Notes under the pieces: model-generated
Database searches by the model: none
What the model was told of the DNA's origin: nothing
Seen by the model: only the letters and a program-made list of their open reading frames with translations
Shown: one piece after another, positions 39,599-51,780 of the stretch
Position numbering within the stretch: the first letter of the stretch is position 1
How the letters are laid out: every line of letters starts with the position of its first letter
Source of the DNA: Macrostomum lignano
Taxonomy: Eukaryota
Direction of reading: 5' to 3'
Assembly (NCBI GenBank): GCA_002269645.1
Contig: NIVC01001281.1
Span: forward strand, 231,302-295,301
Length of the DNA stretch: 64,000 nt
Program-made: the position numbers and the translations under genes

Positions 39599-39627
39599 CC
39601 TCTCATGCTTTCAGCCTCCAGCGCCAG

Positions 39628-41121
39628 ATGTCGCGCCGCGTGTCCCAGAAATTGCCTGGCATCGAGCAGGACGAAGGCGTGGGCGCCCGGGTCCGCCGCA
39701 GCATCGGCAGGCCGGAGGTGGCCCGCCTGGACCCATTTCTGCTGCTAGACGAGTTCCGCGGCTCCGCGCCCGCCGGCTTTCCGGACCATCCGCACCGCGG
39801 CTTTGAGACCGTCACCTACGTGCTGGAGGGCGCCGTTCGCCACGAGGACTTCCTTGGCAACCAGGGCGTCATCAGGCCCGGCGACCTGCAGTGGATGACG
39901 GCCGGCAGGGGCATTGTGCACTGCGAGATGCCGCACGGGGAGGTCGAGTGCCGCGGCCTGCAGCTCTGGGTGAACTTGCCGAGGACTGACAAGATGTGCG
40001 AGCCGGCCTACCAGGTAAGGGGCTTCTGGGGTGCGGGATTCCTGGATTCCCTCCCAGTGTGGTTGCGGGAGTGAAGGATTCTCCCTTATCTGTCTGTGGG
40101 ATTCCCCCTATCTTTGTGTGGGGTTCCCCCTTTTTCTGTGGGATTCCCCTTATCTGTGTGGGATTCCCCCTTATCTGTGTGGGGGATTCTCCCTTATCTG
40201 TGTTGGATTCCCCCTTTTTTGTCTGTGGGATTCCCCCTTATTGATCTGTGGGATTCCCGTTATCTGTGCGTGGGATTGCCCCTTTATCTGTCTGTGGGAA
40301 TCCCCCCTTATCTGTCTGTGGGATTTCTAGATTCCTCTCATATACTAGCATTGGCAAATTAATTATTAAACTTACAAATTTTCTCCTTCAATCCTCATAT
40401 TTGCGTATCATTCATGGCCTGTCCCGCGCAGGACCTTCGCTCCTCCGACATCCCCAGCCGCAGTCAGGGCGGCGTCACCGTCCGCGTCATCGCCGGCGAG
40501 TCACTGGGTGCCAAGTCGCCCGTGTTCACCCGCACCCCCACCCTGTATCTGGACGTCACAGTGCAACCGGGTGAGCGGCGGGGGATGTCCTACACGGGCT
40601 ACTCATGCAGCTGACAGCAGTAGGCTGATGCGGATATTCCATACTGGCTACTCATGCACTCTGACAGCAGTTAGAGTAGGCTAGGCAGGATAAACAGTAG
40701 TAAGCGTGTGATAAAGTGAAATAACCTTCAACACTCCCTCCCCGGTTCGCTGGCAGGCGCCAAGGAGTTCACGCAGCCGGTGCCGCAGGACTGGAACGCA
40801 TTCATATTCGTGCTGAGCGGCCGGGCCGAGTTCGGCAGCAGCGGGGCCGGGGGCGTCATCGGCGAGGCGCACGAGACCCTGCTGCTGGACCGCTCCGGCC
40901 CGGCTGTGCGGGTGGCCCCCGTAACCGGGGCCGCCGCTGCCTGTCGCTTCGTGTTGATCGCCGGCCGGCCGCTCGGCGAGCCTGTGGAGCAGTGGGGCCC
41001 CTTCGTCATGTGCAGCAAGGCCGAGCTGCTCCAGGCCAAGGAGGACTATCGGAATGGCCGCAACGGCTTCGAGCGGGCGCCCGGTTGGGCTTCTTTTGTC
41101 GTGCGGGAGCAGGCCGACTGA
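39628..41121 (+). CDS. PIR: Pirin (bicupin), 3 exons
   Basis: Exons 39628-40014, 40432-40570, 40757-41121. EQDEGVGARVRRSIG, LDPFLLLDEF, GFPDHPHRGFETVTY, WMTAGRGIVHCEMP, GLQLWVNLP, EPVEQWGPFVM; the His/His/His/Glu metal ligands are present. Confidence 0.95.
40060..40325. repeat. Degenerate GGGATTCCCC repeat (PIR intron 1)
   Basis: GGGATTCCCCTTATCTGTCTGT variants. Confidence 0.8.
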
Positions 41122-41154
41122 GTCTTGGATTTGGGCTCGTGCATCCTTGATTTT

Positions 41155-41575
41155 CTGATCCCCTACCCCTAATGTACACCCTCACCAGCTGATCCCCTAC
41201 CCCCAATGTACACTCTCACCAGATGATCCCCTACCCCTAATGTACACCCTCACCAGCTGATCCCCTACCCCTAATGTACACCCTCACCAGCTGATCCCCT
41301 ACCCCTAATGTACACCCTCACCAGCTGATCCCCTACCCCCAATGTACACTCTCACCGGCTGATCCCTACCCCCAATGTACACCCTCACCAGCTGATCCCC
41401 TACCCCCAATGTACACTCTCCCTAACCTATCCCTACCCCAAATGTACACTCCCTAACCTATCCCTACCCCCAATGTACACTCTCCCCAACCGATCCCTAC
41501 CCCCAATGTACACTCTCCCTAACCGATCCCTACTCCCAATGTACACTCTCCCCCCATCTGATCCCTACCCCAATG
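41155..41575. repeat. C-rich ~34-bp repeat 3' of PIR
   Basis: TGATCCCCTACCCCTAATGTACACCCTCACCAGC variants. Confidence 0.85.
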
Positions 41576-41984
41576 TACGCTCTTCAAAACTCCCCATCCT
41601 CCAGTTTACCCTATAGAGTACTGTGTTATCAATGCGTTTGTATGACTCACAAGGGTTTTATAAGTTAGCCGACTCTGTTGTGGAATATTCCTGTTTGATT
41701 CAAAAATATTTTTTCTATCTAAAGTTTTGTAATGCAAAATTGTGCTTAGCTTTCCAAAACCGTGGCAGATCTCTCGATAATTTTTGACATCGCTTTTACA
41801 TGACTCTAGTTTTGCAGCGACATGTTTATGTAGAAATATTTTTGTTGAAATATACTTAATTATAAAGGTGTGTTCTAAATTCTTCTTCTTCTATATTCGT
41901 CATTAATTTGCTTATTATTTGCATGAGTTAGTAAAACAGTAATATTTTAATAGATATTCAAAACATTGTTTTTTCCTATCATAG

Positions 41985-48710: not shown

Positions 48711-48904
48711 GAGTCCTTTTTCTCTTATTATTAAAAAAGATACATCCTGTTTTGCAGTCAGCATTCCTCCCATTTCGATACATTTACTCTTAGCTATTCA
48801 TTGTGTTTAGGATGTGCGGATTTCTGATTTTGCCAATAAACTCGCCATGATTTGATCTTTTATTGTATTTTGAAGTTTTTGTTCTTTTACCGACTAACTG
48901 ATTT

Positions 48905-49400
48905 CATACTGCATGTCACTCTATCACTCTGCATGTCACTCTGTTACTCTCCATGTCACTCTATCACTCTGCATGTCACTCTATCACTCTGCATGTCACT
49001 CTGTTGCTCTCCATGTCACTCTATCACTCTGCATGTCACTCTATCACTCTGCATGTCACTTTATCACTCTGCATGTCACTCAATCACTCTAAATATCACT
49101 CTATTCTTCTGCATGTTACTCTGTCACTCTACATGTCACTCTATCACTCTCCATGTCACTCTATCACTCTACTTATCACTCTGTCACTCTGCATGTCACT
49201 CTGTCACTCTACATGTCACTCTATCACTCTCCATGTCACTCTATCACTCTACTTATCACTCTGTCACTCTGCATGTCACTCTCACTCTACATGTCACTCT
49301 GTCACTCTTCATGTCACTCTGTCACTCTTCATATCACTCTGTCACTCTTCGTGTCACTCTGTCACTCTAAATGTCACTCTATCACTCTGCATGTCACACC
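48905..49400. repeat. 20-bp repeat (DTD2-SDR spacer)
   Basis: ATGTCACTCTATCACTCTGC variants. Confidence 0.9.
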
Positions 49401-49536
49401 AGAAGTGCCCACGCTGGCCTTCCTCATTCATGCCAGAGATTCGGGCCGCCACCTCTTGCTGCTGCCCTGGGCTGTTCTGAGGCCTTCCTTCTCAGCTGTT
49501 GACTTTGTTGAACTCCGCGACCGAGACCGCCCGGAC

Positions 49537-51780
49537 ATGTCCACCTTCATCGCTCGGCTGCTGGGCCCCATCAACAAGGCCATTGTGCTGGCGGCTGTGG
49601 GCGGGGGCGTCGGGTACCTAGTGATTGGCACTGCTAAGTAAGGATGGGTGGGGTAGAGTTTGTGGTGGATGGGGAGTAGAGTTTGTGGTGGATGGGGAGT
49701 AGAGTTTGTGGTGGATAGAGAGTAGAGTCTGAGAGTCCCCAGCCCGCCTCCCGCAGGTCAAACTGGTACAGCGCGTACTCTGGCAAGGAGATACTGGACG
49801 GCCGCACGGTGGTGGTGACGGGCGCCACCCAGGGCATCGGCCTGGCTGCGGCCAAGGACTTCGCCAGACGGGGCGCCGCAGTGATCCTGGCCTGCCGGAA
49901 CTTGCAGAAATGCCACGACGTTGCCAACCACATTCGCTACCGGGCGATGAACGCGAAGGTGCGCTGCTCGGAGCTGGACCTGGCCAGCCACGAGTCCGTG
50001 CGCGAGTTCGTCCAGCGCGACCTGGCCGACGCCCGCGTGGACGCCCTGGTGTTGAACGCCGGCGTCATGGAGCTATCGGCCAAGCCGACCCTCACCGATG
50101 ACCGGGTGGAGACGAACCTGGGCGTGAACTACCTCAGCAACTACCTGCTGACCCGGCTCATGCTCGAGCAGGGCCGGCTGGCGCCGAAGTCTCGAATCGT
50201 GTTTGTGACCTGCAAGAAGGCGCTGAAGGGCGAAGTGGACTGGCAGCGCCTCAACAGCCTGCAGAACTTCGACCCGGAGAAGAGCTACGCGCAAAGCAAG
50301 CTCTTCCAGATGATGTTCGTGCGGCAGCTGAGCAAGAGGCTGGCCGGTGAGCCGAGGAGTGGGGTGGACTCGTGTGTGAATGGGGTGGGCGCGTGTGTGA
50401 ATGGGGTGGACTCGTGCGTGAATGGGCTGAACTCGCGTGTGAATGGGCTGAACTCGCGTGAATGGGCTGAACTCGCGTGTGAATGGGCTGAAATCGCGTG
50501 TGAATGGGCTGAACTCGCGTGTGAATGGGCTGTACTCGCGTGAATGGGCTGAACTCGCGTGTGAATGGGCTGTACTCGCGTGTGAATGGGCTGAAATCGC
50601 GTGTGAATGGGCTGAACTCGCGTGTGAATGGGCTGTACTCGAGTGTGAATGGGCTGAACTCGCGTGTGAATTGAGTGAATTTGTGGGTGAGGTGGCGCTC
50701 GTGTGTGAATGGGGTGACGGAATGTATGCATAAAGCAATAGACGGTCTGGTGTCTGAAACAAAGTCGGTGAGCGGTGCTGGTTATGATGAATATGGCGAG
50801 TCGTTGGCCTGACCAAGAGCCCAGCATCCCCCCCATCACTGCCTGTCGCAGCCGAGGGCTCAACCGTGACGGTGAATGCGGTGGAGCCGGGCTTCACGGA
50901 CACGGAGTACCACCGGAGCATGCGGTTCCAGCACTACCTGGTGTCCCGCTGGATGTTCCGTCTGTGGCACTTCCTCACCTTCAAGTTCCCCTTCCAGGGC
51001 GCCGCCTCGGTGGTCAAAGCGGTGGTCAGCGCGGAGCTGGAGGGCCGGTCCGGCCAGCTGGTGGAGTGAGTGAGCTGGCGGCTCTAACAATCAATAATAA
51101 TACTAGCGCTGAGGCGATTCTTCCCAATCCGCTGACTCCTGAGTCTCTGCGCCTCGGGGGTTGGCCCTCATGGGTTTGAATCCAAAAGCTTTATGAATAT
51201 CATCAATACACGCGCAGCATATCGAAGGATGAACATCGGAAAAGCCCGCTTCCTAACATTTTCCAAGAGACAAGGTTTCCCGTCCTTCCACTCGAGTAGT
51301 CCTTGGATTACTGCTGAGCTAGATTTCCTAGAAACAATGCTAATTCCTAGAAAGAAGGGAATGATGTAGCTCCTGTCTTCACAGTGTATTTCTAGGAAAC
51401 TGGCCGATATGTAGCGTAGATGTCTTTGTGTATTTCTAGGAAACTGGCCGATATGTAGCATAGATGTCTTTGTGTATTTCTAGGAAACTGGCCGATATGT
51501 AGCGTAGATGTCTTTGTGTATTTCTAGGAAACTGGCCGATATGTAGCATAGATGTCTTTGTGTATTTCTAGGAAACTGGCCGATATGTAGCGTAGATGTC
51601 TTTGTGTATGTCTAGGAAACTGGCCGATATGTAGCGTAGATGTCTTTGTAAATCGCGACTCTCTACGCAATTATCAGGGAGCTGAACGTCGAGGAGCTGC
51701 CGGCCGAAGTGGCGAAGCTGGCCGACCTGCACGGCGAGCAGCTGTGGCGGCTGTCCGAGGGCTGCCTGCCCAAGGCCTGA
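49537..51780 (+). CDS. Retinol dehydrogenase 11/12/13-like short-chain dehydrogenase/reductase, 4 exons
   Basis: Exons 49537-49637, 49757-50346, 50852-51065, 51678-51780. N-terminal anchor, [43 protein letters not shown] (YxxxK), VNAVEPG, LWRLSE. Confidence 0.9.
50370..50710. repeat. 21-bp repeat (SDR intron 2)
   Basis: GTGTGAATGGGCTGAACTCGC variants. Confidence 0.88.
51385..51650. repeat. ~44-bp repeat (SDR intron 3)
   Basis: TGTGTATTTCTAGGAAACTGGCCGATATGTAGCGTAGATGTCTT tandem. Confidence 0.9.

Follow-up and report, generated by a model that had tools for sequence, protein, structure and literature searches.

Gene content of the locus

The DNA examined here is a 64,000-nt stretch of the Macrostomum lignano assembly Mlig_3_7 (GCA_002269645.1), on scaffold NIVC01001281.1 from about position 231302 to 295301. 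The whole stretch is called the window, and window positions are used throughout. The flatworm origin assumed in the initial annotation is correct. Between 39.6 and 51.8 kb, the plus-strand genes in GenBank are PIR (pirin), GNPNAT1, DTD2 (animal-type D-aminoacyl-tRNA deacylase 2) and an RDH13-like SDR gene, and only these. To judge from its sequence, this cluster very likely undergoes spliced-leader (SL) trans-splicing with a phase-dependent use of the AUG carried by the leader.

The gene models were rebuilt from the sequence with canonical GT..AG introns (Table 1). GenBank already holds all four genes as consecutive plus-strand "partial" coding sequences (CDSs) of 302, 192, 165 and 368 aa, and the rebuilt models agree with them. 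The best PDB match of GNPNAT1 is human GNPNAT1 (2huz, E = 8e-36) and that of DTD2 is mammalian DTD2 (5xaq, E = 7e-19). A protein search with the DTD2 open reading frame (ORF) returned an identical 165-aa protein on two contigs, and the Macrostomum SDR is named "retinol dehydrogenase 13" in UniProt.

Three homeologous copies of the locus were compared, namely the window copy (L002, NIVC01001281.1), L001 (NIVC01000108.1) and L004 (NIVC01000625.1). L002 matches the window at every base, window positions being those of L002 plus 37780. Gene order, the GNPNAT1 and DTD2 acceptors and four intact ORFs are kept in all three. Relative to the window, L001 differs by 24 nt and 4 aa and L004 by 23 nt and 5 aa, the DTD2 protein being identical throughout. 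The DTD2 CDS of L004 (15589-16086) is 100% identical to that of the window and follows the same acceptor, and no gene is annotated there.

Table 1. Positions of the four genes, their spacers and the features leading into the cluster (TRF, Tandem Repeats Finder; UTR, untranslated region).
Feature	Position	Strand	Description
TATA-like AT-rich patch	38490-38515	+	tctatataaaacaatatataaaaag; directly 5' of the minisatellite leading into PIR; sequence reading
41-nt minisatellite	38579-39598	+	About 25 copies (TRF); extends as far as the PIR acceptors; presumed first-cistron outron
PIR acceptor cluster	39606-39627	+	TG at 39606-39607 in the window; AGs at 39613-39614 (TTTCAG, out of frame), 39620-39621 (CTCCAG, in frame) and 39626-39627 (in frame, abutting the ATG)
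PIR (pirin)	Exons 39628-40014, 40432-40570, 40757-41121	+	296 aa from its own ATG; Pfam Pirin and Pirin_C; GenBank PAA69903.1, 302 aa, partial, start 39610
PIR-GNPNAT1 spacer	41122-43018	+	34-nt minisatellite 41155-41583; unique AT-rich 3'UTR-like sequence 41584-41983; 40-nt minisatellite 41984-42996; 22 nt to the acceptor
GNPNAT1	Exons 43019-43202, 45493-45899	+	197 aa if the leader AUG is added to the 196 codons; Pfam GNAT acetyltransferase; GenBank PAA69904.1, GNAT acetyltransferase, 192 aa, partial
GNPNAT1-DTD2 spacer	45900-47780	+	768 nt unique; 40-nt minisatellite family 46668-47465; 315 nt unique to the acceptor
DTD2	47781-48278, single exon	+	165 codons, 166 aa if the leader AUG is added; Pfam Tyr_Deacylase
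DTD2-SDR spacer	48279-49436	+	24-nt minisatellite to 48709; unique 48710-48908; 20-nt minisatellite 48909-49397; candidate SDR acceptors 49401-49402 and 49435-49436, with a further one (49494-49495) just downstream
RDH13-like SDR	Exons 49537-49637, 49757-50346, 50852-51065, 51678-51780	+	335 aa, counted from a genomic ATG at 49537; Pfam adh_short; GenBank PAA69906.1, 368 aa, partial, start 49438

Start codons of GNPNAT1 and DTD2

M. lignano has a single 35-nt leader, CGGTCTCTTACTGCGAAGACTCAATTTATTGCATG, which ends in ...TTGCATG and is followed by GTAAG, and the acceptor motif for trans-splicing in this species is [T/C]TNCAG (PMC8629364). That the Macrostomum SL closes with a start codon, ATG, has been pointed out (PMC10468722). 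For Schistosoma mansoni, the figures quoted in PMC9851317 from Cheng et al. (2006, J Biol Chem 281:733) are an in-frame share of 28% among trans-spliced mRNAs and more than 40 cDNAs that need the leader AUG.

The DTD2 ORF contains no in-frame ATG anywhere and so encodes no Met, and there is none either between the upstream in-frame stop at 47691 and the acceptor. In the case of GNPNAT1, no ATG is present between the upstream in-frame stop at 42977 and the acceptor, and the first in-frame ATG is codon 46 (in the exon-1 frame from 43019), well within the stretch that aligns with human residues 4-182. In both genes the ORF begins immediately 3' of a CAG acceptor, which is CTCCAG with its last base at 43018 for GNPNAT1 and CTGCAG with its last base at 47780 for DTD2, both in phase 0. 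Residues 17-194 of GNPNAT1 align with residues 4-182 of human GNPNAT1, residues 2-165 of DTD2 align with residues 8-167 of 5xaq, and the nearest other DTD2 proteins start with MS(I/L)SAR(I/V)LLQRC, where the present DTD2 would read (M)AAARLLIQ.... Among the three copies, neither gene has gained an in-frame ATG for its N-terminus.

Since both acceptors are in phase 0 and the SL ends in ATG, trans-splicing at 43018 and 47780 would complete both proteins. A phase-0 acceptor, together with the lack of an in-frame genomic AUG upstream of the conserved N-terminus, would mark an mRNA initiated from the leader AUG, and this combination was found for GNPNAT1 and DTD2 in all three copies. According to the initial annotation, it is the phase of the acceptor that settles whether a cistron uses the leader AUG. 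The phase-0 acceptors and the missing genomic start codons bear this out for GNPNAT1 and DTD2, for which such a role of acceptor phase can be regarded as strongly supported. From the DNA alone it can be read that these two internal cistrons are untranslatable unless the spliced leader gives them a start codon.

PIR and SDR possess their own genomic ATGs. For PIR the leader AUG would be optional: after the acceptor at 39621 it would add M-R-Q to the protein, after 39627 it would form a tandem Met, and after 39614 or after the site used in the homeologs it would be out of frame. Initiation from the leader does not apply to SDR, for which the acceptors at 49402, 49436 and 49495 are all out of frame. 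After 49436 the leader AUG would open a 22-codon upstream ORF that ends before the ATG of the gene, and after 49495 it would open a 42-codon ORF that overlaps this ATG. The base following the leader AUG would be G only in GNPNAT1 and DTD2, a favourable +4 position, which with n = 2 is a mere note.

Splice acceptors and donors

The AGs that the initial annotation had listed at 39614, 39621, 39627, 43018, 47780 and 49495 are all present in the sequence. Its phase arithmetic also proved correct, with 39621 and 39627 in frame with the PIR ATG and 39614 not, 43018 and 47780 in phase 0, and 49495 out of frame. A bare AG within 40 nt before a CDS is uninformative alone. The YTNCAG motif, which is expected 0.13 times per 40 nt, occurs at the functional position for PIR (39614 and 39621), GNPNAT1 (43018) and DTD2 (47780). 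Upstream of PIR, 24 of the 27 YTNCAG matches fall inside the 41-nt minisatellite, the units of which carry CTGCAG acceptor-like motifs.

No plus-strand GT[AG]AG donor is found in the PIR-GNPNAT1 or the GNPNAT1-DTD2 spacer, where the window average of 2.6 per kb predicts about five in each. The donor closest to PIR on its 5' side is located at 37638, 2 kb away. The DTD2-SDR spacer contains two GT[AG]AG donors, both in variant units of the tandem repeat at the 3' end of DTD2.

Annotated 5' ends

In the annotation of Mlig_3_7, assembled transcriptional units were cut at peaks of SL-trimmed reads (PMC5730564). Because of this procedure, and because the listed coordinates behave as CDS ranges, partial CDSs should start 0-2 nt after the 5' end of the mRNA. 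The 5'-partial CDSs indeed begin 0-2 nt past an AG in two independent annotations, that of GenBank and the older one held in UniProt. DTD2 is annotated to start at 47781, directly after cAG, in both copies in which it is annotated; its GenBank range, 47781-48396, exceeds the true CDS by a spurious 118-nt "intron" placed between repeat units. The older UniProt GNPNAT1 entry, A0A1I8I8V0, starts with ASNPHANG, which corresponds exactly to 43019.

The SDR start in GenBank lies one base past ccAG (49435-49436) in the window and two bases past ttccAG in both homeologs, the homeolog acceptor CAG being replaced by ATG in the window. Since the homeolog AG reads TG in the window and the start shifts with it, the annotated SDR start tracks whichever AG each copy has. 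In the older UniProt annotation, SDR starts with VPTL or VHTL, two bases past caccAG (49401-49402). The SDR acceptor named initially, 49495, is thus a genuine out-of-frame AG, but the annotated 5' ends follow other AGs, the one at 49435-49436 or, in the older annotation, the one at 49401-49402.

The annotated start of PIR is two bases past tctcaAG in both homeologs (L001 2424-2425; L004 6368-6369). The window site reads caTG, with A changed to T at 39606, yet it has the same annotated start, which was probably kept through multimapping reads. The three PIR acceptors proposed at first are real AGs. The annotated 5' end (mRNA at about 39608) comes after an AAG in L001 and L004, where the window has TG. 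The acceptor belonging to the window copy itself may be one of 39614, 39621 and 39627. Acceptor choice, and with it the upstream ORF that the leader AUG would open, appears to drift between homeologs.

Spacers and minisatellites

Measured from stop codon to acceptor, the spacers are 1897 nt long between PIR and GNPNAT1, 1881 nt between GNPNAT1 and DTD2, and 1158-1217 nt between DTD2 and SDR. Tandem repeats identified with TRF make up 76%, 42% and 76-79% of them, in gene order. The non-repeat lengths are 455, 1083 and 238 nt, which are upper bounds, as they still include the 3'UTRs. The spacers had been described initially as about 1.3-1.9 kb long and largely minisatellite. This description suits the repeat content of the first and third spacers (76-79%), but the third is only 1158-1217 nt long and the middle one is only 42% repeat.

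The copies bear identical minisatellite families at matching sites, with array lengths that vary up to about 6-fold. The 24-mer array after DTD2 has 19 copies in the window and 114 in L001, the 40-mer array before GNPNAT1 has 25 and 46 copies, respectively, and the array in the GNPNAT1 intron extends over 2.2 kb in the window and 0.44 kb in L001. Because copy numbers differ so widely, raw spacer length is free to vary, which fits arrays that act as tolerated filler. The window intron itself (43203-45492) is 2290 nt long and about 96% minisatellite (18/37-nt units). The 24-nt minisatellite at 48256-48709 (L001 10476-13175) begins within DTD2, its first unit being made up of the final 23 nt of the CDS, stop codon included. 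The 40-nt minisatellite family GATTGCTAATCTAGCCTATCATGGGTGCAGGAATAGAATG (41984-42996 and 46668-47465) precedes both leader-AUG-dependent cistrons in all three copies, and its flanks are unrelated.

Polyadenylation signals in the spacer after DTD2 are an ATTAAA at 48730 and an AATAAA at 48835. If the latter is taken, about 50-90 nt of unique sequence is left before the SDR acceptor. About 50 nt of unique sequence would be left between PIR and GNPNAT1 if the 3' end is formed near AGTAAA at 41930.

Operon status and alternative explanations

In M. lignano, 30% of the genes are SL-spliced and 15% belong to operons of up to nine genes (PMC8629364). Intergenic distances in this species are inflated by repeats; once repeats are subtracted, neighbouring trans-spliced genes show a bimodal distribution of distances that peaks chiefly at about 100 bp, and pairs less than 1 kb apart are counted as operonic (PMC8629364). 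In the GenBank calls, the genes of the present cluster are adjacent and co-oriented with no opposite-strand gene between them. Their repeat-adjusted distances are below 1 kb, with a borderline middle junction that stays under this limit only given a GNPNAT1 3'UTR of about 85 nt or more.

Further hints come from the annotation. Locus-tag prefixes in the assembly represent 95% clusters of transcriptional units (PMC5730564). Prefix Mlig009203 is carried by PIR in L001 and L004 (g32) and by the GNPNAT1 copy g33 directly after the L004 PIR, while prefix Mlig020065 is carried by GNPNAT1 in L001 and by PIR in the window. As the unrelated PIR and GNPNAT1 share both prefixes, at least one assembled unit should span the two genes. 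Moreover, a 327-aa UniProt protein from an older assembly (P0008) is a chimera, riddled with frameshifts, that joins GNPNAT1 exon 2 to spacer sequence, DTD2 and the 5' end of SDR (45570-45902, 47557-48272 and 49483-49611). Chimeric gene models of this kind were treated by Calvelo et al. as signs of polycistronic precursors (PMC12582326).

These features suggest, with a probability of about 0.65, a same-strand, SL trans-spliced cluster that fits the published operon architecture and in which the leader AUG serves GNPNAT1 and DTD2. RNA polymerase II would start upstream of PIR, presumably from a single promoter, and would read through all four genes, with the opposite-strand cytochrome P450 gene at 26-27 kb bounding the unit upstream. 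PIR is placed as the first cistron because what precedes it are minus-strand mariner-like remnants, a satellite and this minus-strand P450 gene, and the TATA-like patch at 38490-38515 is a possible promoter position for the cluster. Each mRNA 3' end would be cleaved and polyadenylated, and the 35-nt SL would be trans-spliced onto the next unpaired acceptor. The minisatellite arrays between the poly(A) region and the acceptor would represent length-variable filler, with some 50-90 nt of unique sequence remaining at two of the three junctions. The leader would then supply the initiator Met to GNPNAT1 (at 43018) and DTD2 (at 47780), provided that ribosomes use the SL AUG. At the SDR acceptors and some of those of PIR, it would open a short out-of-frame upstream ORF, to be bypassed or followed by reinitiation.

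Not all parts of this reading are equally probable. The pairs PIR-GNPNAT1 and DTD2-SDR are each quite probably operonic, and GNPNAT1-DTD2 is the weakest operon junction. For all four genes as one operon unit, the balance tips only slightly in favour, and one polycistronic unit with one promoter is plausible.

Several observations weigh against the operon reading. The plus strand of the spacers after PIR and GNPNAT1 (41122-43018 and 45900-47780) has no AATAAA or ATTAAA, only variants such as AGTAAA, TATAAA and AATAAT. The exact proteins that leader initiation would yield, MAAARLL... (166 aa) and MASNPH... (197 aa), are absent from a collection of 15 billion proteins. The prefixes common to PIR and GNPNAT1 could stem from multimapped minisatellite reads bridging separate genes. 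Furthermore, in each of the three copies GenBank places the start of the GNPNAT1 CDS at 43031, 12 nt beyond the sole AG (43017-43018). This start may be an SL-trimming artefact in one pipeline; several trimming scenarios were tried by hand, and none fits. The GNPNAT1 exon begins with GCGTCAAACCCGCATG (43019-43034), which ends in GCATG as the leader does at its 3' end. About 60% of SL-spliced M. lignano genes are outside operons (PMC8629364). The GNPNAT1-DTD2 junction retains about 400-900 nt of unique sequence after a plausible 3'UTR, near the 1 kb threshold, which could hold a promoter, and it displays AT-rich, TATA-like patches that are poorly conserved among the copies. Finally, SDR has a separate prefix, Mlig005892, so in the annotation the four genes do not make up a single assembled unit.

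These last points are what would be expected if the same-strand cluster were SL trans-spliced without being one unit, either as two units (PIR-GNPNAT1 and DTD2-SDR) or as four separately promoted genes with their own outrons, GNPNAT1 and DTD2 still using the leader AUG. The raw spacers of 1.2-1.9 kb can be cited in the same sense, as 2 kb of upstream DNA suffices as a promoter in M. lignano transgenes, and the middle spacer, with its 1083 nt of unique sequence, has TATA-like AT-rich patches at 47479-47496. However, the patch 5' of DTD2 is not preserved in L001 or L004, and a promoter at the PIR-GNPNAT1 or DTD2-SDR junction would sit inside a minisatellite of variable copy number, where only about 50-90 nt of non-repeat sequence is left. 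The common prefixes of PIR and GNPNAT1 and the single chimeric model covering GNPNAT1, DTD2 and SDR also speak against separate units, and this arrangement is considered rather unlikely, though the most probable of the alternatives.

Two further explanations are much less probable. If GNPNAT1 and DTD2 were conventional genes with ATG-bearing first exons upstream, cis-spliced to 43018 and 47780, the missing starts would be an annotation gap; small exons could escape notice in such lengthy, repetitive spacers, and repeats hamper transcript assembly. Nevertheless, neither of the two relevant spacers offers a consensus plus-strand donor, in both independent annotations the CDS reaches no further than the acceptor and is flagged as partial, and with Met alone added both N-termini already align to the starts of their orthologues. 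Hidden cis-spliced first exons were rejected for want of a consensus donor and are regarded as very unlikely. The idea that the Met-less ORFs represent duplicates in decay, or else artefacts of assembly, in a polyploid, repeat-rich genome draws on the fact that Mlig_3_7 is a redundant assembly and on the unannotated DTD2 copy of L004. It is hardly credible, given that each of the three copies has all four ORFs intact, that amino acid changes are few and that the DTD2 protein does not vary.

An extension of the operon reading can also be considered, in which the minisatellites are functional, for example in spacing or insulating 3'-end formation from trans-splicing, and in which the need of GNPNAT1 and DTD2 for the leader AUG is a fail-safe that would allow only resolved mRNAs to be translated, never precursors or read-through transcripts. 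It is compatible with the locus because the 40-nt family precedes both AUG-dependent cistrons in all three copies and because the arrays lie exactly between poly(A) region and acceptor, and we regard it as improbable.

No M. lignano transcript contigs with these genes were found in Logan. The two nearest DTD2 matches from outside Macrostomum (Logan contigs L005 and L006) have 424-605 nt 5' of their own ATG and are uninformative on SL use. The literature and its supplements, searched by gene names and locus tags, contained nothing on the locus.

Neighbouring features of the window

The next gene 3' of the cluster encodes 63 aa on the minus strand (52416-52887). On the other side, two mariner/Tc1-like transposase remnants broken by stop codons (Pfam Transposase_1 and DDE_3) occupy 33668-34298 and 36638-37699 on the minus strand, between PIR and an upstream 3.4-kb satellite with a 21-nt unit (29243-32883). 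Farther upstream, a cytochrome P450 exon on the minus strand (26180-27289) separates the pirin cluster from plus-strand exons of a DNA ligase III-like gene (22456-24432, with DNA_ligase_A_M and LIG3_BRCT matches). Two long (AGAC)n microsatellites are located at 20723-21650 (232 copies) and 58816-59199 (96 copies). The TRF output for the window comprises 49 rows, and in some cases several overlapping rows describe one array. Rfam at gathering thresholds gave no matches in the whole window, and no SL RNA gene or SL remnant was matched in it even when 3 mismatches were allowed.

Comparison with known systems

Operons with repeat-inflated spacers in M. lignano and the use of the flatworm SL AUG as an initiator have already been published, and the present locus is an additional, unusually legible example. 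It opens no new question. The phenomenon itself, statistics for the whole species and annotations of the genes were all available already. As transgenesis works in this species, the small locus could be used to ask whether kilobase-sized intercistronic minisatellites matter, whether an out-of-frame leader AUG lowers the translation of PIR and SDR, and how acceptor choice and phase drift between homeologs.

With the M. lignano operons described by Wudarski et al. (2017, PMC5730564) and Ustyantsev and Berezikov (2021, PMC8629364), the cluster shares the species, the single 35-nt leader, the same-strand arrangement of conserved housekeeping genes and the YTNCAG acceptors. Intergenic regions inflated by tandem repeats, amounting to about 100 nt after repeat subtraction, and operons of four genes were also reported there. 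Nothing essential differs, apart from the GNPNAT1-DTD2 distance near the 1 kb cut-off; the locus was not singled out in those papers.

The leader-AUG mRNAs of Schistosoma mansoni, as far as they are presented in PMC9851317 after Cheng et al. (2006), are similar in having an AUG-ending leader and phase-0 acceptors, some of these mRNAs being devoid of any other start codon. Compared with that account, the present case concerns a free-living macrostomid, the dependent genes are internal in a candidate operon, and DTD2 encodes no Met. In parasitic flatworms (Calvelo et al. 2025, PMC12582326; Protasio et al. 2012), polycistrons are likewise resolved by a single class of AUG-ending leaders, and chimeric models serve as pointers to polycistronic precursors. 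The candidate operons are defined there by a raw intergenic distance of at most 300 bp, a cut-off that the present locus fails in raw distance and passes only after repeat subtraction.

In Caenorhabditis elegans, operons are also transcribed as polycistronic pre-mRNAs that are resolved by 3'-end formation and trans-splicing, and their content is likewise of the housekeeping type, with two to eight genes per operon and about 100 nt of intercistronic sequence. However, C. elegans has a dedicated SL2 for downstream genes and leaders without an initiator AUG, whereas M. lignano has one leader for all positions and tolerates minisatellite spacers on the kilobase scale.

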